A DNA stretch of 55,731 nucleotides, filler included, from Trichosphaerium sp. ATCC 40318 (GCA_038496445.1; 3 parts of 3 records of this genome joined end to end with filler, not necessarily neighbours in it), one strand, 5' to 3'. Shown: positions 13,663-41,708, counted from the whole stretch's first letter. Numbers and translations are program-made. Notes: a model not told the origin generated them from the sequence alone.

Positions 13663-16405
13663 TGTAATTATAAAGAAGCTGATGTACAGTTAAAAGATAC
13701 TACCGCAAGTTTTGCAGTAAATCACGCCTCAGGAGGTACGCAAGTTCTTTTTTTATTTTGCTTGGTTTTAGCTTATTGTTGTTTTTTTGAAAAGGCGAAG
13801 CTTTTTCATTGTCAATTGCGCTACATGATGCCTATGGATCTCAAAGTGCTATAAGTATGTATGATCCAATGTTCGATGCACAACCACCAAGTACTGATAC
13901 TGGTGTTGCTACAACTGAAGATTCAAGACCTGGTGCTGTATGTGAAGTCTATTTTACTTTAGTATATTGATTTTAATTTAGTTGATGATGACTTTATTCC
14001 CTCAAGTGTCAACTGACGATGAACCTCTAACTGAAATGATATTTTTACTTGACAGGTACATTTCATTTTGTTTATTCTCTTTAATAATCCTCGTTAGGAG
14101 TGGTAGTATGGCTGGTAGCCGTATAAAGAGAGCTAAGAGTCTCTTACAGTTATTTCTTCGGTCGTTGCCTGTTGGAACACGCTTCAATGGTATGATGCTC
14201 TTTCAGCAGTTCTTATCATTTAGGATTTTTTACTTATTTTTGTCAGTCTTTGGTTTCGGAAATACATACGAGAAGATGTTTTTCGAGAGTACTGAGTTTA
14301 ATGATCAGACACTACAAGATGCTACCCTACAGATTCAAGGCATTCAAGGTGATATTTTTTTTTGCAAAAGTAGACAAGAGTTTAGTATGTTAATATTGTT
14401 CTTTTAGCAAACCTACAAGGGACTGATATATTACCTCCTCTTAAAGATATTTTTAGTGTTCCTGCTGATCCTGAGTATCCACGACAAATATTTTGTCTTG
14501 TGCGAGGATAGTGGTGTTATTGTTTTATTTATTGTACTCTTAGACTGATGGAGAAGTATCTAATACTAGTCAAGTTCTTCAGTTTGTTAGAGAAAACGCT
14601 GGGTTTGCTCGGATTTTCACATTTGGTATTGGATGTGATGCTTCTGTTCCTTTAGTCAGAGGTCTTGCACGTTGTAGTGGAGGAAAGTATGAATTAGTTA
14701 AATCAGACGCTGTCATGGAATCAGCAGTTATGAGGCAACTGAGTAGGAGTCTGCAACCTGTTTTAAAAAATGTACGCCGAGATCTCATTTTTTTTGTTGG
14801 ATGTTTATTGATGGTACTAGGTATGTCTTGACTGGGGTAAAGTACCAGTATTAAAGAGACCAATACCGCTTTCTCTTGCACCAATATTTGTAAAGAAAAG
14901 CTTGTAGTCCACGCGTTTTGTAAAGCTGAAGATATTCAAGAGACGAGCATTAATATTACTGGAACTACTGGTGCTGATGATCATAAATTTTCTATTCCTG
15001 GTAAGTAATATTGCTTGAAGTTTAATCTCAGCTAACACTTTATTTGTTGTTAGTGTCTAAATCTTGCTCTGTTGTTTCTGGAGCTATGTTACATAGGTTG
15101 GCTGCATCATCTCTTATTACAGATTTAGAGAGTAAAGGAGAGCAATACAAACAACGTATTATTGATATTGCATTAAGGTACTACAAGAAGAAATTGACCG
15201 ATTTTTTGTGACTAAGACGTTGCATGGTCGTTGATTTTCCACTGCATGTGTTACCACAATCTGACTTCTATATCTTAGATGGAATATTCTGTCAAGGTAT
15301 ACTACCTTTGTTGCTATAGAGGAGCGACAAAGTGAATCTGCGGTAAGTACTTTTTTTTATTTTGAATTTTTTGTGCTTGAATGTACCTTTCTTACCTTTC
15401 CTTAGACTGGGGTATTAGAGACTGTTGATATAAATGATGATGCCAAGAAGTCTCGGATCTTACTTTCTGAACAGTTCCAAGCAAGGTTAATTCAAGAGCG
15501 TATGGAACTTAAACGCAAGGAGAAAACAGTAAAGGATCGTATTGCTACAGGTATTGTTACAAGCGTTTATTGATATTCGCTGGTTGTCGTTTAGTTGATC
15601 TTCTATCTAGAGCGTGACTTACCTTATAAACCGTTTATGTCCAACCATCAAAATAGACTAGAACCTCAAATGCTTGTAGTCAGGGAGTACGATTCTTTTT
15701 TTTTTTCTCTTTTTTTTTTATTGAAACAAGAAGTTCGGTTTGTTTTTTGACATTATTTTTGTAGGAGTTCTAGTAGTGGTGTTACACAAGTAAAAAAATC
15801 TGCTTCGTTTACAAATATGATGCCTGAATTACCACATACACCAGTGGCTGTATCACAGTCTGCTCATCTAGAGCAATTTGATACTTGTGAAAGTGATACA
15901 GATTCCGGCTGGAGTTCAGCTGGTACTAGTGACACGTTAAATGAAGATGTCTCTTCTAGTACTTCTATATTATCTAGAAGAGTATACAAGCTTATAGCAA
16001 CACCAACAAGAGGTACATCAAGCATGAAAACCACCTGTTTACTGATTGTTTAAAGCGAGCACTCAAAGTCCATTTGACAACTTTGTTCTCCTTCAAAATG
16101 CTGATGGAAGTTTCTCTCTCTGTCTTGAGTTTGCACAGCAACTTGGGTGTGAAATTAGTACTATAAAGAGTGCAATGCCTAAGGAGTTGATGAAAGAAGA
16201 GCTTGGTATATCTATATGGGTTACTGTTCTTGGCATTGTGTTGTTGTCCTTAAAATTCTCAGAAAAAAAAGGGTTGTGGGATTTACTAAGTAGAAAGTCA
16301 GAGAAGTTTGTTACTAAGGCACTATTAATATGCCCTAACGCTAACAAAGAGTCAATACTTGAGGAAGCAAGGACTTTTTTAAGTTCAAAATTTCCTTGTA
16401 AGTAA
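13663..16405 (+). CDS. vWA domain protein (VWA5A / VIT-vWA family), 5' truncated, multi-exon
   Basis: EMIFLLDRSGSM (MIDAS), LFLRSLP, GTDILPPL, TDGEVSN, RIFTFGIG, YTTFVAIEER, LQNADGSF, IWVTVLGI. Confidence 0.88.
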
Positions 16406-18774: not shown

Positions 18775-18861
18775 GTTCACAAAGTTGTAGGGTACCAGCT
18801 TTCAAACATCCGGTATTGAGGATGCTGTATAATACTTTATTTTTTAAGCTTGTTGTAAAGG

Positions 18862-18974
18862 AGAAGCTTTTTCATTGTCAATTGCGCCATGATGCTAATG
18901 AATCTCAAAGTGCAATGTACGATCCAATGTTCGATGCACAACCACCAAGTACTGATACTGGTGTTGCTACAACT
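18862..18974 (+). repeat. Duplicated fragment of the vWA gene (copy of ~13797-13916)
   Basis: GAAGCTTTTTCATTGTCAATTGCG and GATCCAATGTTCGATGCACAACCACCAAGTACTGATACTGGTGTTGCTACAACT occur at both sites. Confidence 0.9.
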
Positions 18975-25013: not shown

Positions 25014-26069
25014 CAGGTCTAAAAATTAAAGTGGTATATACCAGTTTTTTTATGGTATATACCACTTTTTTCAACAAAATGGTATATGAACTGGTATATA
25101 CCATTTTGAAATACCACTTTTTTTAAAAATTAAGTGAATAAAAAAGTGGTATATAGAAGTGGTATATACCACTTTTCATTCACATAATGAGACCTTCTAA
25201 AAATGGTATATAAAGTGGTATATACCACTTTTTTATGGTATGTGGTATATACCACCTTTTTATTGGTATATACCACTTTTATGGTATGCTTCAAGAAGGT
25301 CATTAAGGAGCTTTTTGGTAATGGGTTTTCTTGTTGAACGATCATGGACGTCATACATTGAACGGTGCGTAGGGACCTTAGTATATCATAGAATCTAACC
25401 AAACAAAGCTCATTCGGACCGCAGGACCTGATTCCAGTACCAACATTGAGGAAACTATATTGCAGGTATTATACAGACGTTCGTGGGTACCAGACAAAGT
25501 TTTATTTTATTTTCGTTTGATATACATTAACCGACCTCCGTAGGCCTTAGTAATTGATAGATTCAGGTGGAACCACTTTCATTAGATGCGCAGCATGTTT
25601 TTACAGTAGGTACAGCAAGCTCATGGAGATGGACGAATTTTCCAGACGCCCATAGTAATGTAACTGTAGTGGACATTGTCCAAAACTTGTAACTCACAAA
25701 CTGTGTATTAAATAAAGTGTATTTTCTGGAATTGCAGGTGTACTATAAGTAAGCATAAAGTGGTATATAAGAGTGGTATATACCATGAAAAACTGGTATA
25801 AAAAAGTGGTATATAACTGGTATATACCTAAAAAAAGTGGTATAAAAAGTGGTATATTTTTTTTTTTCTGGTGAAAAAAAGTGGTATATTTTCTGTTTTT
25901 ATACCTGTTTTTTTTGGTATATTGGTATATTTGGTCAATATACCACTTTTTTTGGTATATTTCAGTCAAAATATACCACTTTTTTTGGTATATACCATAA
26001 AAAACTGGTATAAAAAAGTGGTATAAAAGTGGTATATACCAAAAAAACTGGTATATTTTTTTAGACCTG
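25014..26069. mobile_element. 1.06-kb non-autonomous DNA transposon, CAGGTCTAAAAA TIRs, AT target duplication (copy 1)
   Basis: AT|CAGGTCTAAAAA...TTTTTAGACCTG|AT; subterminal arrays of GTGGTATATACCAC; near-identical inverted copy at 45775-46829. Confidence 0.92.
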
Positions 26070-26793
26070 ATTTATTAATCTCTTTTACAGCCAAATATGA
26101 CTTGATCAATATGTATGTGTCCAAAGAAAATGAAATTATTTGTGTTGTGCAAATGGATGATGATCATGATGAAGAAAAGTGGACTTTACAACAAGCTTTA
26201 AAAAGAAATGTTGTGGTAGATAGTTTCTTGAAAACTATTTTACTAAAAGAATAAAAAATTATTTTAGTTACCAATAAAAGATTATCTTATATCTCATAGT
26301 CATGAATAGATATAAAAATAAATAATATCTCATTATGTTGCCATGTATGTATAAATATGAATTTAAATTACAGTTTAGCTACACATGATATACTAAAAGC
26401 TTTGTGTATATGAAAAGTGTGCATACATATTTTTTACCAAAAAAAAAAGCCAATTACAAACTCAAAATCGCTTACATCTATATAACTCATCACTATGAAT
26501 ACATAAAAATCAATTATTGCTTGTACCATGTTTATATGACCTAATAACATATATGTACATACATAAAGTAATTAAAAATGCATTTGTAAATGCAGCCTCC
26601 AAACGCAACTGCATGGTAAAAATATTTCAAAATTTGCAAAAAAAAAAAGTTCGCATGTCGCTCATGGGCCATGTAGTGCACGAATATCATTTTCGATGCT
26701 GCACATCATAATAATACATGCCTGTGCCTAGCGGCACAGCCATGAAAGTAGCAAAATCTAATAAAATCAAAAAAGTAGAGGTTTAGGTAACCT

Positions 26794-26910
26794 TAACCCT
26801 AACCCTTATTGTACAAAATCCACCAAATAATGTACTAATTTAGTTAGGGTTAGGGTTAGGGCTAGGGTTGAGGTTTATGAAAGTACAAATTAAGTTAGGG
26901 TTAGGGTTTA
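26794..26910. repeat. Interstitial telomere-like repeats (CCCTAA then TTAGGG)
   Basis: TAACCCTAACCCT at ~26794, TTAGGGTTAGGGTTAGGGCTAGGG at ~26845 and TTAGGGTTAGGG at ~26895. Confidence 0.75.
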
Positions 26911-27242
26911 GTTTTATATTTGCAAAAAACCATCGACACCTTAGGTACATAGGTTTTTCTAGCGAACAATATCCACATGCTATTATTAAAGGTGAAAAAA
27001 CCAATGGTACAGGTTAAAGTGCGTTAATCCAAAAAGTAACAGAGAACGCGTTTTAGGTGGTTTGGAAAATCACTTAAACATAAATATCTCTTACTTATCT
27101 GTTTTAGGATGATTAAAGCATTGCAACAGCCTTATTACACTATTAAAGAATGTATTTAAAGCATTAACTCCAAGTACGTTGTTTTTAAAGCTTATTTCCA
27201 CTTAATTTATCAAAAAACCCTATGCGTTCTTAATTTAGCATT

Positions 27243-27380
27243 CAGGTCTGAAAATTATCATGGTATAATACCATATTTTGCAGTATAATTGTGGTTTATG
27301 GTACTACCTTGGTATAATCACAAATTATACCATAAAATTATACTGCAAAATATGGTATAGTACCGTGATTTTTAGACATA
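27243..27380. mobile_element. ~140-bp foldback MITE related to the CAGGTCT family
   Basis: CAGGTCTGAAAAT ... ATTTTTAGACATA; internal TACCATATTTTGCAGTATAATT / AATTATACTGCAAAATATGGTA inverted repeat. Confidence 0.65.
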
Positions 27381-27533: not shown

Positions 27534-29371
27534 TTATTGAAACACAAAAAAATTACAACGTATGTGGTGTTCATAGCTTAATGCCACTAGTATGAACCTA
27601 TCCATTGCTTCATTCCATTCAGTAAAGTTAGAGACAGCAAATAAAGGTTCAAAAGTTGTCAGTGCTGCCATAGTATGGATGCGCGGCTGACAGTAAAGGA
27701 CATTTGGATAGTACCAATTGGGTATTAACATATCTATTTTGTATTTGAGCCATTTGTAAACAAAAGGCCACAACTGATGAGTGGCTTGGTGAAGCTCACA
27801 AACAGCACAAAGCTGCTGACAACCAAATTCATCCATATTGAGATCTAAACAATGAAATTAAAGACAAATGGTTAATGTAGTTATCTTGGTACCTTCTTTA
27901 GTGTTATCCACATAGTCAAAAAGCTGCTCATCGGATATTTCAAATAAAATATCTTTTGTTTTCTTGTCGTAAAACTCAAGGTGATCTTCATCTTGAAAGT
28001 CAATGGCCATCACTGGAAAGAGTTTGTAACCAACAATAGCTGCTACAGAAACTAACAACAATTTTTTGTTGGCCAAAGCATAGGTTGTTTTAGAAGTATA
28101 AAGTGTATCTTGAAAATAAAAAGAATTTTCAATCTCGTAAGTGGCAGCATTGGTAGTAAATCTGACAGTGACAACTTCTTCTTTATCTTCAGTGACTATT
28201 TTTCTTGTTCCTTTCAAGAACTGACCTTCTACACTGAAGTGAAAGACATCTCTATATTAAGCAAGTAATTGTTAAACTATAAAACCATAAACAAAAATTT
28301 CGTACTTGTATAACTTTATGCCAACTCTTATGTTCAATAATACTTTGATGCATCGTCCATAGTCAAAGGTAGCTCGTATTTCTTTGGTTTTTTCCTCATT
28401 ATTTTTTATCCAAACTCCATGTTTGACCCAACGGCCATGGTGTTTAATAAACAATGGAGCCAAAAAATACAAACACACCAATGAAAAACAATGATCAAAT
28501 TCAATGTCACAAAAACCACGAATCTTCTCAAAGATCTCACCAGGAATCATCAACAATTTTGGTTGATAAGGCTCAGCTACAATTGTAGTCAATAGTTTCT
28601 TTTGGGCATCATCCCTATACAAGTGTTAGTAACACAAAAGGTGACAGTTTGTATTTATATTTATAAATAACGTACATTGAACTACCATGTTTTGACATAG
28701 CCGCCTTTTCTATCACCTTGCCAATAGTATACCACAAACCTATTGATTCATTAAACTATTAACTGATAAACATACACGCACTGAGAGGTGGAGGATATAA
28801 TGGTGTCCGTGACAAAAGATCAAAAAGACACCAAGATTCAGTGAGATTGACTTTAAGAATTACTATTTTCACAATTTTACTTCTTGTCATCTACATTTAT
28901 AAGCTGATAGGTTGGTTTGCAAACAAAAAAGAGCGTACTGTTTCAGGTAAAGTAAGTTCAGCATCCATGATAACAGCATCAACAACACGTGAGTGTTTGT
29001 CATTGCTGAATTGATAAAAGTCAGAATATATTGTTCTTGAACCATGAATTTCTCTTCCAGCAACAGTACACACAGCATCACGAGATTTGTGAAACTGCAG
29101 TAGTGTATCCACAGGTTCATCAATAGGTAGAGCATCTTCATAAGTACTAGAAGATGTTAGCAGAGAAAACGAACCCAAAATTGCTAAAGTACTTGTGCTG
29201 AAATTGTCCCGTAGATATGACATGAATGTAAATGGAGCCAGGATTGATGCTTGTCACAGTTTGCAAGTGCTTACCAAAGTAATTACACAAAACAGTACTG
29301 TGTTGTGTCAAATCAGAGCGTGTGAAAGGTTCAACTGCTGAGAGCACTATTGCTTTCATTTTTCTATCCAT
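27534..29371 (-). CDS. Multi-exon protein with internal F-box-like motif; one apparent frameshift near 29220
   Basis: LLMIPGEIFEKIRGFC..FSLVCLYF resembles an F-box; collinear minus-strand ORFs joined by short introns. Confidence 0.5.
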
Positions 29372-31418
29372 CTTTGGGCGTCGTGCAAGCCAATAATCTA
29401 AAATACAGAGTTAAATGTTCTGAATGGCTTAAAACACTATAAACCTGAGCACGTACTTGTTATTTGGGCGTTTACAAGTAAAATACCTAAAATAAAAAGT
29501 TAAATGGTCTAAACGGTGTAAAGTGCTATAAAACTGAGCATATACCTAAGATTAAGGTTATTTGGGCGTTTTTCAGCAAAAGCCTTAAAATAACAATTTA
29601 AAAGACCTAAAAGGCCATAAAACAAGAACACATACCTAAAGTGGGCGTCTGTGATGGTGAATAGTGAAAACTCACAGTCAAAAGAGTTAAAAACAGACCA
29701 ACAAGTTTTTATAATTGATATTTATTATTTGACAGGATGGTTTTCTATTAACCACATGTACCTTCTACCATGAAAAGTAAATCTGTGAGTGCAAGTGAGT
29801 ATACAGCACTGCCAGCGCAAGGTTCCAACCTAAAACAAGTGATGTTAGGACAATGTCAGTAACAATGAGTAAAAAAAATAAAGTAAGTCACCAGAGAAAA
29901 CAAAGCAGAATTTCTACGAGTAAAAGGCAGCAATCACTTGACATAGTCTGTTGTTAGAGCATCAGTTGTAGGAGCCTCGGTGCTGTAGTTGTAGGAGCCT
30001 CTGTAGTTGGCGCTTCTGTCATTGGAGTTTTTGTAGTTGATGCTTCTGTCATTGGAGCTTTGGTTGTAGGTGCATCTGTGGTGCTTCAGTTGTTGCGGCT
30101 TCAGTGGTCGGTGCATCTGTAGTTGGAGTCTCTGTTGTAGGTGCAATCGGTAGTTGGAGCTTTGTAGTTGGTGCTTCAGTCGTTGGAGGTTCCATCTTGT
30201 AGTAACCTCTGTAGTTGGTGCATCTACAAAGAAAGTTAGTTGCTTTAGAAGTAAAATACAAAGTACCAGTTGTTGGCACTACAGTTGTAGGTGCTTCAGT
30301 TGTTGGAGCATCCATCGTTGGTGCATCAGTTGTAGGCGTATCTGTAGTAGGTGCTACAATGGTAGGAGCCTCAGTTGTTGGCGCATCCGTGGTAGGAGCT
30401 TCAGTCGTTGGGCTTGAGTGGTCGGTGCATCTATAGTAGGCGCTACAGTGGTAGGAGCTTCAGTCGTTGAGCTTGAGTGGTCGGTGCATCTGTAGGCACT
30501 ACAGTGGTGTAGGAGCTTCAGTCGTTGAGCTTGAGTGGTCGGTGCATCTGTAGTAGGCGCTACAGTGGTAGGAGCTTCAGTCGTTGAGCTTGAGTGGTCG
30601 GTGCATCTGTAGTAGGCGCTACAGTGGTGTAGGAGCTTCAGTCGTGAGCTTGAGTGGTAGGTGCATCTGTAGGCGCTACAGTGGTAGGAGCCTTTGTAGA
30701 AGGTGCCGTAGTCGTCAGAGCTTCTGTGGTGCTGTAGATGCTGGAGCTTCAGTGGTAGGAGCCTTTGTTGTAGGCGCATTTGTAGTTGCTGCCTCAGTCG
30801 TAGATGCCTCTGTAGTTGGCGCTTTTGTGGTAGGAGCTTCAGTCGTTGGGGGTATCGGTAGTTGGAGCTTTGTAGTTGGTGCTTCAGTCGTTGGAGGTTC
30901 CATATTGTAGTAACCTTTGTAGTTGGTGCATCTACAAAGAAAGTTAGTTGCTTTAGCAAGTAAAATACAAAGTACCAGTTGTTGGCACTACAGTTGTAGG
31001 CTTCAGTTGTTGGAGCATCCATCGTTGGTGCATCAGTCGTAGGCGCATCTGTGGTAAGAGCTTCAGTCGCAGGCGCCCTGTAGTTGGTGCCTCAGTCGCG
31101 GGAACTCCATAGTAGGCGCAGTAGTAGGTGTTACAGTGGTAGGTGCCTCAGTAGTGGGAGCTTCAGTAGTAGGTCCTCAGTCGTTGGCGCTTCTGTGGTT
31201 GAAGCATACGTTGTGGAGCGTCTGTGGTTGGTGCTTCGGTGCATTTGTGGTTGGAGCCTCTGTAGTTGGTGTCTCAGTTGTTGGTGCTTTGGTGGTTGGT
31301 GCATCTGTAGTTGGTGCCTTTGTAGTTGGCGCTTTTGTGGTTGGAGCCATGACGTTCTACCTCACTTGAGTGAAAAAAGAATTTGAAAAAAAAAAGTTTT
31401 AATTTTAAATTCTCGTAC

Positions 31419-31517
31419 CACAGGGTGCGTTGTAATTGTCAAGCCAGCGACTATCCTGGTCATCAATCTCATACTCAATGCCGTTGCTAGTGAAATCAAC
31501 CTCACCAGGTGCTTTGT
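31419..31517 (-). pseudogene. Isolated exon resembling the Enhancer-of-polycomb-like (EPL1) domain
   Basis: IEYEIDDQDSRWLDNYN fits the EPC/BRPF/JADE EYDxDxxDxxWL motif; exon bounded by AG and GT. Confidence 0.55.
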
Positions 31518-31719
31518 CTAGGTAAAAAGTGTCAACACCCACTGAAAAAAAAAATTATTCTCTTACCTCATCTGTTGTAGGCAGTTGGCGCATCTATTGT
31601 AGGCGTATTTGTTGTTGGAGCGTCAGTTGTTGATGCATCGGTGGTAGGTGCATCTATTGTAGGTGCATCTGTAGTTGGAAGGTCAGTCGTTGGTGCATCT
31701 GTAGTAGGTAGTTGGTGAT

Positions 31720-33480
31720 CAATGTTCTTTTACCTTGGTCCCTTTGTCTTTTGGTGCATCTGTGTTGGTTACCCATCCATAGACGTTGATATGACAAGGT
31801 GGTTTTCTTTTCATTCAGCACCCTATTGTGTAAGTTATTACTTTTTGGAGATTTATAAATTGTACGTAGCTTGAGTCCGCTCAGGTAGAAGCTTCCTGCT
31901 GGACAACTCTTTAGTAAATCGTCATTCAACTCTTCACCAGCAATACACAAGTTTAGAGTTAAGTTTTATAGAGACCATCCTTTGGCACATGCGGCAGCCT
32001 ATGTGAAGAATTTAATTAAAGAACACATATTATTTTTTGAATGGTTACCTGACGTGTTGCTTTGATGAACGGTTTAGGATTAAGAAGCTTATTCTCAGCT
32101 GTTCTTTTGGTGTTTCATCAAGTGATTGTCCAATTGCGGTGAGTTGACATGTTCTCTTTGTGAAATCTCTTACCCATCCGAATACATGTGTTGATGGTGA
32201 AATCTACACCGAGATTATTAGTATTTTCTGTGTTAGCTTCGCTTTTTGTTTACCTCATATTTGAGCCATGCCTTTGAAACATCACCTCTTCCAATACAAT
32301 CCATAAGATCTCTGATATCGTTTGTATGCTTCAGTTTGCCTTGACAAGCCTAAAAAAAAGCAAAAGAGTCAAGAAAGTGCAATCGAAATGGTTCCTTTAG
32401 TATTACCTGAGTAAGTTCGTCAAGGTCCTTATGGAGTTTCTTGAGTTGTGAAGCGCCTTGATTTACTTCTCTATTAAAGTAACGCCACAGTGGAGATGAT
32501 TTATCAGCTCTTTTTTCAGTTGGAGATTTGATATCCTACAAAAACATATCAGTCCATGTTTTTCTTTGAAAGAACGCCAAACTGCGAGACTGTGGACTGG
32601 TTTTTTCTTACCTTAGAAAGCAGTTTTATCCAGTCTGTGGTTATGGTTTCAAGCTGTTTTAGCTTTTCTTTATTTCCACCACCCTCCTTGTGTGTGAGTT
32701 AAATTACAACCTCGAAACAATAACATACTTGTTCAGAAACGCGTCATCAGTGGCTTGAAGAAGTTGCATCTGTTGTAGATTAAACACAACACGTTTTGTC
32801 TTGATTATAATAACTTCAGCGTTTGGTGACAAACTGAGCCATGTTGGATGCGTCCACTCTGGTAATGTAGAAACCTAGTAAAAACATTAGCATCGAGAAG
32901 TCTAAGAAAACCAACTAACCCATCTCACAAAGTCTTCTCTTCTTGTACTCTTTGGCAGCTTGACTTGTAATTCTAGAGAGGTTTTAAGTGTTATTTCACA
33001 AGGATATAGGCTTACCATCTTGGCTAGTACTTAAAACAAGAGAAAAGTCGTCTTTGTAGGCGTTTGGTTGGAAGAGATGTGAAAGGAACGAGTCCAGGAG
33101 TCTTTGATCAAACGCGTTGTCAACTCAACCACCATAAATAGTATGACCTAGCAAGCGACGCATAGCAGACCATAGAATAGTATCAGGAGATACAGTATCT
33201 CTTCCTTCGCTCACAGAACCAATCCAATAATCTAATGTTTAATAAGCACGTGGTTGATAAAGTGCAAGAAAACGTTTAATAAGATAGGTTCGTACCAACA
33301 CATTTTTGAGCGACTTTCTTATCTGTTTCATTACACTTGAACATCTTAAACCATCCGTATGGTATATACCTACGTCTTTGTTGTATAACAGCGTGGAACC
33401 TATCCATTAAGTTAACAACCAAAACAGAACCAAAGCTCTTAGTAAAACTAATAACTTACCATGCGAGAAGGAAGTACAGT
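31720..33480 (-). pseudogene. DYNC1H1: Intron-containing C-terminal fragment of cytoplasmic dynein heavy chain
   Basis: LYFLLAW/FHAVIQQRRRYIPYGW, IYGG*VDNAFDQRLL, LPEWTHPTWLSLSPNAE, PLWRYFNREV, ACQGKLKHTN, WVRDF, FIKATRQ, GWSL*; premature stops and a frameshift. Confidence 0.9.
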
Positions 33481-33578
33481 TGGCGCATCTGTTGTAGGCG
33501 CATCTGTTGTTGGAGCGTCAGATGTTGGTGCAGGTGTAGTAGGCACATCTGTTGTTGGAGCGTCAGTCGTTGGCGCAT

Positions 33579-33723
33579 AAAACTAGCGCAGATCCCTTTA
33601 ATGAGTCAAATAGGACTTCTAATACATTTGTGGTAAACATTGTTTACTCACAAGTGCTTTAAGTCCCCACGTGAACAAAGTGCCAAGTAATGCTTGTAGT
33701 ACTGGATGTATGCCTTCAATCAT
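33579..33723 (-). pseudogene. SLC39A11: 5' fragment of a ZIP11-type zinc transporter (exon 1, intron, start of exon 2)
   Basis: MIEGIHPVLQALLGTLFTWGLKAL / GSALV matches the ZIP11 N-terminus (QALLGTxFTWG..GAALVF), then runs straight into the minisatellite. Confidence 0.8.
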
Positions 33724-34872
33724 ATTCCAAGCTATTGTAGCGTTCTTGCAATTCAATATCGGTCGTTTAAGTTGTTTTGACGTTTTGTGAAGTATATTTA
33801 CTTCTAGCCTCGTGGTTCGCGTTGATAACTATGGGTAATCGTATTAGAAAGTCGTCGCTGTAGGGAAATTCTCATACGCAAAAATTGGCTCAATTCGTTA
33901 AAATATCACCGCCTGACGGTACGGTAACTGTAGTTGGCGCCTGTTGTGGAGCGTCAGTTATTGGCGCAGGTGTAGTAAGCGTATCTGTTGTTGAAGCGTC
34001 TGTCATTGGCGCAGGTGAAGTAGGCGCATTTGTTGTTGGAGAATCAGTCGTTGGTGCAGGTGAATTGTAAATACCTTCACTTTTTGTTGTATATTTTTCC
34101 TTGCTCCCAGAATATATGCGTCTGCTCGGAATAGCGTGTTTTTTAAAGTCTCACATAATTTTTAGCACCAGTCGGAAAAAACACTGTAATTACGAACCTG
34201 AGTTTGAAATTGCGCTTGTTTAATGCTCTCCGGCAAGTGTAACACAACTAATAATTTTCATCACTCGTACAAACCTAAACGAGCGTTTAGTGATGTTTAC
34301 ACATTGTAGAATTCTTTTAGTGGAATAGCGTACCTTTACCTGTAAGAATGCCGTAAGTATAAGGTTAAGAGAGAAAGTTATACCTTAAATCAAATACGTC
34401 TAAACAGGTCTGAAGTACGTAACTAGGTATTTAACAGTATTGTATCTAAATTTTCATTAGCGTTTCTCTTAAATAATACAGCACAAAGCAAAAGAAAAGG
34501 TACGTGTAAGGTTACGTAGCGTATGTGTAGTGAGTATTTTTGTGTGATGCAAAAACCCTCCAATTGGAGGTTTTTTGTCATTTTTTCACCAGAGCATATT
34601 GTCGCAATGCGCTTTTTGCGCGTAGTAAGCGCCATTGCGAGGGTTTACAGAAAAAAGATTCAAAAATTATTTTTGTTTTTTTGAATTGCTCTGATAAGTA
34701 CCCAAACAACCATTTCTCATTAAAAAACTTCATATAAGCCATTCGTGTTTTGGCGGCTAACTGTTTTTGAGATTATTTTTTTTTTTTTGGTTTTTTCTTC
34801 CGTTGCCGCTCATTTTTGAATTTTCTTTATTTAGTACTTAACTATACCGTTGTAGGTTTCGACGCTTAGCTC

Positions 34873-37790
34873 ATGTCCATCGTACGAAACACATCCAAGC
34901 GGTACACAGTGAGTTTTTTTGTTGGTGCTAAAATGAGGTGTAGAAAGCGAGTTTCAAGATCCAACTCCCCCAAAACACGATCGAAAAAACCACGCATACA
35001 AGATCTAAAGGTAACGTGTCAAGTAGATGATATAAACTCCGAGGTACGGTGACATGTTTTATTATAAACGTCAAAATCTTAATTATTTTCTTCAGACAGC
35101 AAATGCAAAGAACCGCGATCAATTTACAATACAAAGAGACAAGATTAAAAATGCTATCATTAATCTCAAAAGTTTATTAGAAGTTACAGTGGCAAATGGA
35201 GGCGCGAAAATATTAGAAGAGCCATGGGCAAAAGAATTAAACTTAAAAGCAACGTTATTGTCCAAAACACATACAGAGTGGATAGTACAAAGTGTGTTGC
35301 CTGCAAATATAAAATCGCCAACTGCAAACACAGTAAAAAAGCTTAATCAGGTACGAGAAGTCTCTTTACATCAAGCTTTTCTTATTTTTTTCCAATACAG
35401 GTGAAACGTAAAGCTGAGAAGCACAATATATCTGGTGCTGCCTTGGTGCGTATGGCTTTGATTGTACGAAACAAAAGGCAACAAGGTAAGCATATATTAC
35501 CAATCAACAACTTATTGTTATTGTAGCTAACAAAAGGCGTTCTGTTGTTCCTTATGGCACGTTAAAATCGAGCATTATGCCAAAAGATATAACCATGGCA
35601 TTTGATTATCTCAAGTGCAACACAATGCCTACTTTAACTCATTTTCAAGAAGGTACAGATAAAACAAATACAATGACACGATTACCCTCTAATGTATTAT
35701 ACAAGAGAATGAAGAAACAGCTCACGACAACATTAAAAGTGTTACTATCAAAAACACTTTTAATTCTACAAAGCTGAATATAGATTGGAGAGGATCTGTA
35801 TCACAACTGTGGCTTACAACATATGTTATACCTGACGAACTGTTGTTTGTGTGTAGACAATTTGCTGGACAATTCAAAAATGATCTCAAACACACGGTAC
35901 ACAAATCCATTGTCTTAACCACGTGTTTACTTTGTTAGTTTTGGTCTAAGCCCGGTGATTTGTGGGAAGCAAACATTATGAGGAGGTATAAGACCCAAAA
36001 TTATGGTAAAGTTGTTTGTGTTACCCCATATTCTGGTAAGTTGCTTATTTGTTTGGTATCGTGATTAACATCAACCATAAAGATAAGTTTTGTGGCAACT
36101 CTGAGGTTAAGATACCCATTCAACTAAATGAAGCCAAGTGAAATCAATTATTGCCTATTATAAATGCTCATCACAACATTACAACCAACACAAAAGCTTT
36201 AAATGACAGTGAAATTGCGGACATGGTCATAGAGTTAAAGGTGAGTTTATACAAAAAAATGGTGTTTGCAATGGTTAAATGTAGTTGTTTATAGGAGTGG
36301 CTTACAGGCAAATCAAGCTTAAGAATGCATAGTGATGGAGACAAAGGCCAATTGCATAGCGGCTCTGGTATAACATGTTTTGGTTTTGCTTTGAAGGATG
36401 GTAAAAAAGAAAAACTTGATAAAACCATAATCATTCAAACAAGCACGTGCTTTATATTTATTTTGTACTATGGTAATATTTACTTTAGATTCTGAAAAGT
36501 TTAAGGTTAATGGCACTAACTTTGTGTGGGCCTTAAGCAACATTGACCCTCCATCAGCTGATGTCCAAAATGATGGTGATGGATTTGGTCCAGGGGTAGT
36601 GCGACATTCTGTTGAAGTTGTGGTACCTAAAGGAGTCCGCTACTTTTCTTTAATTGTTAGACATTTCATTTGGACTCTGCCTGAAATAAGTGACCTTGCT
36701 ATTGCAAAACAGAAGCATTTGGTGGGGTTGTCTTCCAAAAGCTATGCTAAACACACCAAATTGAAACACTCTCTATATGTTTGTCCACAAAACCTGCGCT
36801 ATAAAGCCAACAACCACTTTCTTCTATCTTCTTCTTATAAATTACCTCAAGATGATGATAAAGAAACAATCATACACCCTGGAACTCTGTTAATTTACAA
36901 TTTACCTGGGTGCGTTTATTTGTAATTGCATAGTTGATTTAATATTCTTTTCAAGCTTGTGTGAAATGGGTTTGATTGCTTCTTATCAAAGAACTTTTCA
37001 AGGACATACAGGAGTAGGATTAAAAGTGGTAGTTAAAAAAGAGTGTGTTGCCAAAGAGTACATCAAGACTTTACTCAGTTACATTTAATGTTATTGCAGA
37101 TATTTTTCAAGTGATTGGGCGGTTGTATACTCTACTGCAACAGAAATATCTCAAGATAATGTTAGTGCGCTCATTAAAAAGTCACTGTATTTGCAACGGA
37201 ATGTCGACAATGAAGATGAAGGTTGTACTTTTTTTATAACCCCCTGCACTCTATTAAAACAACATGTTGATGTTGATTATGATTCACTGGGCTGTACGAG
37301 CTTGACATAGACTTATGTTTTGTTGACATTGTATTGTAGGCGCCCGTCAACTTGGAATTGTGTCAAGGTGGTATGTTCATGGCTTTCTTTATTACGGAAA
37401 ACAGCCTGTTGTGGTTTTTAGAAAAATCAAACGGCTAGGAAATAATCTCTCTCTTCACCTCAATTGCAAGTGCTGCACACTGCGTCCATTATTCTTGAAT
37501 ATATTTAGTGATGTACCTTCTGACAAGGACATGTCTGATGAAGATATAATAACTAAAGAAAGTTTTCATTGGAATACAATCAAACAATTAGATGGTACGA
37601 TTTTTTTTTTTGCAACTTTTTTTTCTAATGCTCCTTTTATTACAGTATTACCCACACTAGTAAATCAGTTTGCTTACACCGGAAAGCTATCCAAAGAAGA
37701 CAAAAGAAAATGTGATTGTACGTTGGTTGTAAGAGTATTAAACGTCTAAATTGTTTTATAGGTTTAGATAAATTGTGTAGGAAACAATAA
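34873..37790 (+). CDS. Multi-exon protein of unknown function; candidate accessory ORF of the adjacent transposon
   Basis: MSIVRNTSKR/CRKRVSRS.. followed by many GT-AG exons to GLDKLCRKQ*; ends ~60 bp before the transposase ATG. Confidence 0.55.
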
Positions 37791-37851: not shown

Positions 37852-40800
37852 ATGGCTAACGTGTATTGTGACGCTTGTAAGACATGGTATACATGGAGAC
37901 ATTATCATTACAGGCACTTAAAATCTAATAAACATACAACGGCGACCATAAAGCTAGGTACATGTACAAAATACCTCAAATGTACTTAGTTAATTATAGG
38001 AATGGGCAAGCGGAATAGAGACTTTTCTCAAGGAAACAACAATAACATTGGCAAAGCAAAGAAACGGATTAGAACTCATGATATTAATTTGGGAGATTCA
38101 GCAAATGCCAGTGAAAGTGTCGACCATCTGCTTGCTTTTAATCTAAATACTGATTGTGATGCCAATAGCAATGCAATAAGTCACAACAGTGACTCTGAAA
38201 GTCAAAGTAGTGTGGACAGTGGATTTAATGGCACTGGTGATGAGAGCAATGAAAGCAGTGTCAGCGACGGGTTTGCGGAACCAGTTTATTTAAGAGATGA
38301 CAATACAAAGCTACCTTTAACAGATCTTCCTCACTTTTTAAGTGTTGGTGGTGAGGCTATGCGCAGTGGTGAGTTAACAGTAGCAATTAGTGTAGCATTA
38401 ATTTGTTTGTTAAAGAATTCGGGCAGTTGTCTGATGAGCAATGGAAAAAAGAACAAAGGCCTCCAGATTTTGAGCCAAGTGATGACTTTAACTCTGCCTC
38501 TCCTCAACAAAAGCTTGGTTATTTGTTGTTTGCGCTAAAGTTGGAACACAAGCTGTCTTTGGTTTTGTGTAAAAAAATTTTAGAGCTGTTCAACACTGCC
38601 TTGGTTCTTTTTGGACTTGACGCTAATGGTACGTAACATGCCACATTGTGATTATCTCTTATGTTGGGTTTGTTAGGCACTGTGTCTGTTTCTGTGAACA
38701 CATTGTTGAAAGAAATTGCTACAAAAGTACATTTACCAGTCGTATGTGCCTTTGTCCTTGTTTATTGTTTTACATTAGTTTTTGCCTCAATTTCCACCTG
38801 AAATAATATCAGTGGACAAAAAAACCAAGTCAGACAAAGTTGTATACACGACACAAGTTCCTTTTTACTCTCCATCAGAGCATATCAAAAGAGTGTTGTA
38901 TTATTTGCCCACAAGAAACAGCATCGCTGAATGTATAACTGATGGACCATCCACAATGCACACACACTATGAAGATGGAACTACAAAAGCAGAGAAGGTG
39001 TACAAAGGTCCAGAAACTGGGACCAATGTGAAAAAAGTGTTCGCAGATGTACTTGACATTTATGAGGCAGACAAAAACAACACTATTTTACTCCCAGGTA
39101 TACTATACTTTATCTTTTGATTGCTTACTCACTTTTAATAAATAGCATATATAAGCAAGGATGATTTTACATACGATAAAAAAGACAGTTTGGGACCTTT
39201 GTATATGGTTGTTTGGAATTTGCCTAACAGTGCCAGTGCTACTGGAAAAATGTTGTTGGCTGTGCTACCAAAATGTTTGCATGAAGAAGATCTTTTGGAA
39301 CATGTTGTAAATGATTTTTTAAAGGTGTACAATGGCATGAGATGTTACATAAAAAGTGAACAAAAGGTACGGGCCAATTTTATTGGGTTTTTTTTACAAT
39401 TTAATCCAAAAAATAGTACTTCACAGTGTATTTGAGGTTGTCTAAGATATTGGGTGATTCACCGGGCTCAAATAGATTGATATGTACAAAATCCTTCACT
39501 ATTGATCAACTTATGTTACTTTTAGCAATGAGGAGTCCAACATCTCATTATCCTTGCCGAATATGTAGAGTGCCAAAAAATGCCTTTCAATTAATTACAG
39601 AAGACAATGAGATTGTAACAGCCACAAGAAACACACTCCAAATCCTCACCATGGCACATGAACACTCATATAGTGATCATATTAAAGATTGTTTTAGCAT
39701 TCACAGGCAGGTGAGCAACAACCCACAAATTTAGTTTTACTTTAGATTAACTGGTATTTTTTTTTCTTTTAGTCTCCGTTCAGTAAGCTGTTGAACCATC
39801 ACTTTGACTTTTTTTTGGATTCTCCATATTGTCCATTTCATAACATCATATTGGGCATAGCTAAAAATGTGTTGGATGCAGCATTGGCTAAAATGCAAGA
39901 GCTGCAACCCAAAGAAACATTTAAAAAAACTCTAAATCGTAGAATCAAGTATGTTAGAAAACAAAATACAGGGTTAGGAAAGTACGTACATGTTGTTGTC
40001 TTGATGTATTGATTCAAAGTCTTATTAGAATGAAGGCAGTGTGGAATAATACAGGATGTTTAGTATCTGAGAGTTGGGATGGAACAGACATGAGAACCTT
40101 TTTGAAAATGTCTGCTCTGGTTTTTCGCCACATTTTACCTGATGACCTCATGTCAATGTGGTACCTTTCTATTTCTCTTTGTGTGGCCCTTTTATTGACC
40201 AATTTAAAGGAAGCATTTATTGGCTTTTGTAGTATTGACACAAAGAGATTTTATGTCAGAACGTCAAGTCAAAAGTGTTACGGTCAAATACAAAAACTTA
40301 TTGAATGAAATAAAGCTCAGTTTACCTGGTACTGTTTGCAATTTGCTTTTTTTGTATGTGTCTGATCATTGACAACTTATTAGATCTAAATTTAGACACA
40401 ACAAACTTTCACGTGCCTTACCACTATGAATACATGATTAAACGATTTGGAGTTTTTAAACACTTTAGGTACACTTTTATGAAGTGGTTGTGATTAACTA
40501 CATTATTAGCACTTATGCATGTGAATCTAAGCATGCCACCATCAAAAAATGGAAGTTGTCGTCCAAGAACCATGACAAAATAAAGTGCGTGAAATGTTCC
40601 GTTTTCAACATACCAACAAAGCATAGGGACATAGTAGACAAAGAAATACCGTGGTTAATGCTATCATATATTGGCAAGTTTGATGCCCTTTGCACTTCCG
40701 TGCTACATGATCAATACAAAGATAACATTGAATTGTCAAGGAAAGTGATCACTCCTCCATTTTACAAAAGACCAAAGGCACACTGGATTTTACGTAAGCA

Positions 40801-41229
40801 ATGCAAACAAAAAAATTTACATCTCACTTTGTTGTTAGGCAACAAAAGATGTGTTAGAGAGTTATGCCACATGGAAAAATTAGCATTTGAAGCCACATTC
40901 CCTGCTGATACTAGAAGACTTATGTCAGAACCGTTTGTTTCCTATAACTCTGTAACAACGGAAAATCTGACAATGAAGCTTTCTGTCTCAAATGAAACTC
41001 TTTTTAAATCATGGAGACCGGCAAAGAGAGAAACTAAAAAAGACTGCATATATGTTAAAACTCAAGCCATTTATCAAAGCATCACTGACAACAATCAGGT
41101 GTTTGTATTTGGAGAGTGAGCTGTTTGTAGTAGTGCAACAACTAATTTACTCATGTAATTCTAGGTACTTTACTTTAAAAAACCCAAACAGCCCATACGA
41201 TGCCAACAGTGAGCTATTGACGTGCAAAA
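37852..41229 (+). mobile_element. Multi-exon CACTA/EnSpm (Plavaka-like) DDE transposase with N-terminal C2H2-like finger
   Basis: YCDACK..H.KSNKH; ILGDSPG..HYPCRICRV; PFHNIILGIAK; NFHVPYHYEYMIKRFG..TYACESKH, the D-x-P / CxxC / H-xxx-LG / HxxxH..FG..ES-x-H order typical of CMC transposases. Confidence 0.75.
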
Positions 41230-41708
41230 CCTTCCCTTCTTGCTTTTGTAGTTCCATCTTCATAGTGTGTGTGCATTGTGGATGGTCCATCAGTTATACA
41301 TTCAGCGATGCTGTTTCTTGTGGGCAAATAATACAACATCTTTTGATATGCTCTGATGGAGAGTAAAAAGGAACTTGTGTCGTGTATACAACTTTGTCTG
41401 ACTTGGTTTTTTTGTCCACTGATATTAATTTCAGGTGGAAATTGAGGCAAAAACTAATGTAAAAAATATAACAAGGACAAAGCACATACGACTGGTAAAT
41501 GTACTTTTGTAGCAATTTCTTTCAACAATGTGTTCACAGAAACAGACACAGTGCCTAACAAACCCAACATAAGAGATAATCACAATGTGCATGTTACGTA
41601 CCATTAGCGTCAAGTCCAAAAAGAACCAAGCAGTGTTGAACAGCTCTAAAATTTTTTTACACAAAACCAAAGACAGCTTGTGTTCCAACTTTAGCGCAAA
41701 CAACAAAT
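41230..41708 (-). repeat. Inverted duplicate of ~38520-38998 at contig end
   Basis: Reverse complement of transposase exons and introns (LEHKLSLVLCKK, PQFPPE) with scattered 1-nt indels. Confidence 0.9.

Follow-up and report, generated by a model that had tools for sequence, protein, structure and literature searches.

We found that a minus-strand region (29755-34400) of a DNA stretch from Trichosphaerium sp. ATCC 40318 (GCA_038496445.1) is a mosaic, in which blocks of a 15-nt coding repeat alternate with shortened, intron-bearing pieces of unrelated genes. The mosaic is real, and it is now dead. On balance, we think that one mucin-like array was repeatedly broken and patched with filler DNA copied from these genes. 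The stretch (the window) is 55,731 nt long and joins three records of this genome end to end with filler; coordinates are those of the whole window, and the analysis covers its 28-kb piece 13663-41708. The DNA of this piece is eukaryotic, with a G+C content of about 36% and spliceosomal introns of 40-75 nt, and its spliced gene models were searched exon by exon.

The repeat, delimited with Tandem Repeats Finder and unit parsing, is Thr-rich and falls into four blocks, all on the minus strand. Block 1 (33928-34067) has 15-nt units of the PTTDA/PTTPA type with a 45-nt higher-order period. Block 2 occupies 33478-33578, and the final 51 nt of block 3 (31583-31715) find their best match (46/51) in the final 51 nt of block 2. 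The long block 4 (29945-31350) is of the PTTEA/PTTKA type, contains internal duplications of 59, 117 and 708 nt, and has two canonical introns of its own (30975-30932 and 30266-30224). Variation among units is concentrated at third codon positions (1.4-2.0 bits vs 0.1-1.0), a test that is partly circular, as the units were chosen by consensus. Because of this third-position variation and the spliceosomal introns, the array must derive from the gene of a Thr-rich, mucin-like protein. Mucin-like coding repeats are common in the surface proteins of protists and animals. The initial annotation called the minisatellite coding, which it no longer is: stops or frameshifts occur in every part. The core repeat positions are changed in 4-12%, mainly by C>T or G>A. 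The exact repeat pattern had no match in the metagenome and viral contigs searched.

Searches bore out the order of alternating blocks and gene pieces given in the initial annotation, including the block coordinates and the three identities ZIP11, dynein and EPL1-like; its list was incomplete, as a propionyl-CoA carboxylase beta exon after the last block had been missed. Identity, order, orientation, introns, decay and junction phases can all be read directly from the DNA. The ZIP11 5' fragment (33579-33927, 349 nt) begins about 205 nt upstream of its own ATG and comprises upstream DNA, exon 1 (33723-33652), an intron (33651-33596) and 17 nt of exon 2. Over 24 aa, exon 1 is 79-88% identical to eukaryote proteins, and Pfam Zip is found downstream at their loci. 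The largest piece (31716-33477, 1762 nt) is the C-terminal part of a cytoplasmic dynein heavy chain in 11 exon pieces, recognized by Pfam AAA_lid_11 (E 1.6e-7) and by PDB dynein matches. It is collinear with human residues 4182-4433 where tested, and its best matches are to Dictyostelium dynein. Together with the short introns and the base composition, these matches indicate protist rather than human DNA. Protein collections and metagenomes searched with the dynein exons gave no usable match; the sole match, P0001, was rejected as spurious, being a repetitive protein. The EPL1-like fragment (31351-31582, about 220 nt) consists of an intron (31566-31518), an exon (31517-31419), a second intron and a few nt of the next exon, and it opens with 14 nt assignable to either the array or the donor. 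Its exon has a weak but specific match to Pfam EPL1 (E 2e-4, below the curated cut-off). The carboxylase fragment (29755-29944) is made up of intron-like DNA and an exon (29829-29755) matched in PDB (E 1e-4 to 3e-4) and NCBIfam (E 1.2e-5).

All four identified pieces share the orientation of the repeat reading frame (4/4; chance 1 in 16), as previously described for the pieces then known. All retain introns, which points to capture at the DNA level. Retrocopies are ruled out, since introns are found in all pieces, poly(A) is missing and upstream DNA is present. The ZIP11, dynein and carboxylase pieces are likewise ruled out as native domains of the mucin gene, as they are shortened parts of unrelated housekeeping genes. 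The earlier claim that every piece starts or stops in mid-exon is true for some ends, but the ZIP11 piece starts upstream of its ATG and the dynein piece has its 3' end just inside an intron. An exon/intron-like stretch before block 1 (34068-34400, minus strand) either was captured as well or belongs to the array itself. It has no Pfam or NCBIfam match. Since one open frame continues from 34150 into block 1, it may be the array's own 5' part. A LIM-like reading of this stretch was dropped, having no profile support. Within the ZIP11 insert, 33831-33919 on the plus strand could be the first exon of a head-to-head neighbour gene, with an MGN start, one stop and then a 5' splice site. If so, the insert would also hold an antisense piece and a two-way promoter.

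We then investigated the junctions. As the initial annotation had noted, the ZIP11 insert lies cleanly within one unit, which it divides exactly between G and AT. When the insert is removed, blocks 1 and 2 form one perfect in-frame unit, with no base lost or doubled; the array rejoins within a few nt at the EPL1 site, and the dynein site is ragged. Similarity is also higher between adjacent blocks than between distant ones (local scores 111, 105 and 83 vs 70, 61 and 76). The likeness of neighbours and the unit restored at the ZIP11 site suggest insertion into one pre-existing array rather than a chain of independent pieces. The ZIP11 insert (33928) and the native introns of block 4 (30976 and 30267) split the unit at the same base, between G and AT in the Asp codon; this shared position may be chance. 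A target duplication of fixed length was rejected, because its 12-nt candidate does not hold for EPL1.

The internal inserts have one sequence in common on their preceding side, again as first described: each of the three stands after the 9-mer GCGCCAACT, at offsets of 4, 0 and 0-14 nt. With random breakpoints in the rebuilt array, such a shared 9-mer arose in about 0.5% of trials (p about 0.005), and in 0.03-0.05% (p 0.0004) under the stricter count that assigns the ambiguous 14-nt stretch to the donor. None of the three insertion sites lies beyond nt 390 of the 1708-nt array (p 0.012; span test p 0.06). These 9-mer and position tests are post hoc and concern one locus. The 9-mer and the clustering are not explained by ordinary random patching. 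They would be expected from targeted capture, in which a nuclease, an inserting and excising transposon or a DNA structure cuts after the 9-mer and repair regenerates the cut end, building a repeat-spacer series. Clustering at one array end and the single orientation also agree with targeting, as do the 51 nt preceding the dynein and EPL1 inserts, which are each other's best match in the entire array (46-47/51, next 43). However, a native higher-order repeat could explain the 51-nt match, block 4 has three further 9-mer copies that lack an insert, and the block starts differ, so that the blocks are not simple duplicates. With a post hoc test, a single locus and no enzyme identified, we regard targeted capture as improbable. 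We give similarly little credence to its fullest form, a eukaryotic repeat-spacer acquisition in which a coding minisatellite with a preferred, self-renewing break site directionally stores sense pieces of housekeeping genes between its blocks, in many array copies.

The pieces no longer encode proteins. Over about 405 codons of the dynein piece, three stops interrupt the frame and at least two frameshifts fall within exons, whereas the neighbouring transposase-like gene, whose ten exons were joined by script for stop counting, has neither in about 628 codons (5 vs 0 disabling changes, Fisher p 0.009; stops alone p 0.06). In the carboxylase exon, conserved sites are altered from G to E, G to S and P to L, each by a single G>A or C>T. 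No open reading frame crosses the junctions, every one of which has a stop or a frame change. The block 1 frame meets a stop 12 codons into the ZIP11 insert; the frame shifts from ZIP11 to block 2 and again from block 2 to dynein, which ends in an intron. For the EPL1 exon, a frame shared with its neighbours requires one particular acceptor and still leaves a stop on either side. Because open fusions are lacking and the pieces are decayed, a selected exon-shuffling cassette, as the initial annotation had proposed, is disfavoured.

Could the mosaic be an artefact, formed by chimeras of whole-genome amplification or by misassembly through a shared repeat? The last 478 nt of the contig are an inverted copy (38521-38998 vs 41235-41708) in which nearly all differences are single-base indels (about 8). 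Copies of this kind are characteristic of unpolished long reads that folded back or became chimeric during amplification, which is the likely origin here. About 20 frameshifting units in block 4 have a similar density and are possible read errors. Given the artefact at the contig end, these frameshifts cannot be trusted as mutations, and we dropped them as proof of decay. For the mosaic as a whole, an artefact is decidedly improbable. The fragments have substitutions and stops that intact donors would not have, so that four separately decayed donors would be needed; a fresh chimera is unlikely because the pieces are decayed, whereas a laboratory chimera would copy intact donors. In addition, the blocks share at most 13-18 identical bases, too short to mislead an assembler, near-identical duplications of 59-117 nt were resolved in the assembly, and the ZIP11 junction restores a repeat unit to the exact base.

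Repair of breaks with filler DNA is, in our view, probably how the mosaic arose. The starting point would have been a contiguous segment of a mucin-like host gene that held about 1.7 kb of 15-nt coding units as well as native introns. We infer that the blocks are parts of this one array and that breaks began the captures. The unstable array would have broken several times, and each gap would have been filled, by template switching or by end joining, with 0.2-1.8 kb of DNA copied from an unrelated gene; which pathway acted is likewise a matter of inference. With donors copied as DNA, introns and upstream sequence would be retained. The product would never have encoded a protein, or would no longer do so, and would have been drifting for some time. 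As expected of filler DNA, the internal inserts are flanked on both sides by interrupted array that rejoins, with the precision given above for each site. The initial annotation had offered either ectopic repair of breaks or capture directed by a transposase; ectopic repair is the part that fits best, given the rejoining at ZIP11 and the gradient among blocks. The contig also makes fragment copies away from the array: 18850-18974, beside the second Rab gene, is a copy of a VWA-gene exon (13784-13916) that is 89% identical and has no minisatellite beside it.

Several points weigh against filler repair. The common orientation of the four identified pieces (p 0.06) has no reason under random filler, and the clustering of inserts and the shared 9-mer described above tell against it as well. 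The 14 nt at the EPL1 junction fit the repeat and would also make plausible coding sequence of the donor, and microhomology between donor and array is still at the stage of this one candidate. The carboxylase piece and the 5' stretch, which stand at the array ends, would need separate events or loss of the gene's own ends. The orientation might reflect selection against antisense copies of essential genes, or template choice linked to transcription. As a 'landing pad' for gene fragments, the array would be known from one locus.

Filler repair has precedents, although the initial annotation knew of no comparable case. In rice tandem repeats, gene fragments have been used as filler (Wicker et al. 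2010, as cited in PMC3503983). In those grass cases (rice A-U5 and GLA-U2), as in the mosaic, a broken tandem array received a foreign gene fragment as a DNA-level copy, with array on both sides, and no element ends are needed. The grass cases are single inserts, whereas in the mosaic about 250 nt of array hold three, all oriented alike and after one motif, and its host repeat is protein-coding and comes from a protist. In antibody switch regions, breaks acquire exons together with adjoining intron DNA (PMC11200687). The LAIR1/LILRB1 inserts there resemble the mosaic in bringing exon and intron DNA from distant genes to breaks in a repeat region, and the EPL1-like piece has the same anatomy. 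However, the switch-region inserts are somatic, enzyme-triggered and selected in-frame, while the mosaic is inherited, decayed and has no open fusion. The capture process is thus known, and what is unusual here is its concentration in one spot.

The main rival reading is a Pack element. The mosaic might have been carried by a CACTA-like (CMCT) DNA transposon, with the mucin piece itself a captured fragment and later captures nested in it during gap repair linked to transposition. An intact multi-exon transposase-like gene lies 3.5 kb away on the plus strand (37852-41234, running from 37852 to beyond 41100). Its N terminus has a zinc finger, and its motifs follow the order D, D, CxxC, H, HxxxH, E of the CACTA/Plavaka clade, an order described for the CMCT clade (PMC12730594). 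The family call rests on motifs, and Pfam was blank exon by exon. A non-autonomous element (25014-26069, 1056 bp) has CAGG..CCTG ends that are inverted over 12 nt, numerous palindromic repeats in its subterminal parts and an AT duplication of 2 bp; 27243-27379 is a small, 137-bp hairpin relative, and a lone copy of the terminal 10-mer stands at 34405 (four 10-mer matches found, 0.13 expected). The four confirmed identities, with introns, are what a Pack element would carry, and soybean Tgm-Express1, with five intron-bearing fragments (PMC1947982), shows that such elements can hold multi-gene cargo. However, no pair of terminal repeats encloses 29755-34400 within the piece, where the right side of the search is limited by the contig end. 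The motif occurs at 25014, 26069, 27243 and 34405; the 27243 end is paired with its own partner and the 34405 end faces away from the mosaic. Direct joins between fragments are usual in Pack elements, and none is seen here. We therefore consider transposon cargo rather unlikely.

The Pack systems (Pack-TIR/FoSTeST, PMC8277862; Pack-CACTA, PMC13317346; Tgm-Express1, PMC1947982) do resemble the mosaic: several unrelated fragments with introns follow one another, repetitive DNA is the fragile site, and a transposase, here a CACTA-like candidate, lies nearby. They differ in that no enclosing terminal repeats or target duplication were found for the mosaic, and its pieces are separated by a host-derived coding repeat, where Pack pieces are separated by element sequence or by each other. 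Most Pack-TIRs present in a single copy originate from gap filling that involves short microhomology and is independent of transposition (PMC8277862).

Helitron capture, too, yields several intron-containing fragments in a common orientation, and a Helitron would account for both the common orientation and the kept introns. A strong G+C-rich 13-bp hairpin followed by CTGG and T is present on the minus strand (34640-34586), but it lies upstream of the mosaic, on the wrong side for a 3' end. No hairpin-CTRR end was found downstream on the cargo strand (29700 to 26070 scanned), and a Rep/helicase gene was not recognized in the 28-kb piece. Non-autonomous Helitron copies need no such gene. A Helitron origin seems very unlikely.

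On present evidence, this dead, single locus illustrates a known outcome of repair, not a new system. It displays the raw insertion event three times and supplies a testable motif. If mucin-like coding repeats recurrently take templated inserts in inherited DNA, this would be a direct route to domain-on-stalk proteins and a germline parallel of the antibody switch-region inserts.

The left part of the analysed piece contains ordinary genes, namely the VWA-domain gene and two Rab genes. The right part has much mobile DNA, three uncharacterised multi-exon genes and the intact transposase-like gene. One of these multi-exon genes (34932-36925, plus strand), upstream of the transposase, has an HxD motif followed by H and R motifs, a set reminiscent of a 2-oxoglutarate/iron dioxygenase; Pfam, Atlas and fold searches gave this reading no support. 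Fungal transposons of the CMCT clade carry TET/JBP genes (PMC12730594). The single-sequence fold of one flanking exon had a pLDDT of 36; Atlas matches to Inhibitor_I9 were judged to be chance, and the other Atlas search was blank. No viral relatives of the flanking genes were found in the searches made. Left of the mosaic, a multi-exon gene on the minus strand (27534-29371) has no Pfam match or viral relative, and is preceded by three to four imperfect repeats of 90-100 nt (29370-29614). An A+T-rich stretch with short telomere-like TTAGGG runs in both orientations lies at 26788-26914.

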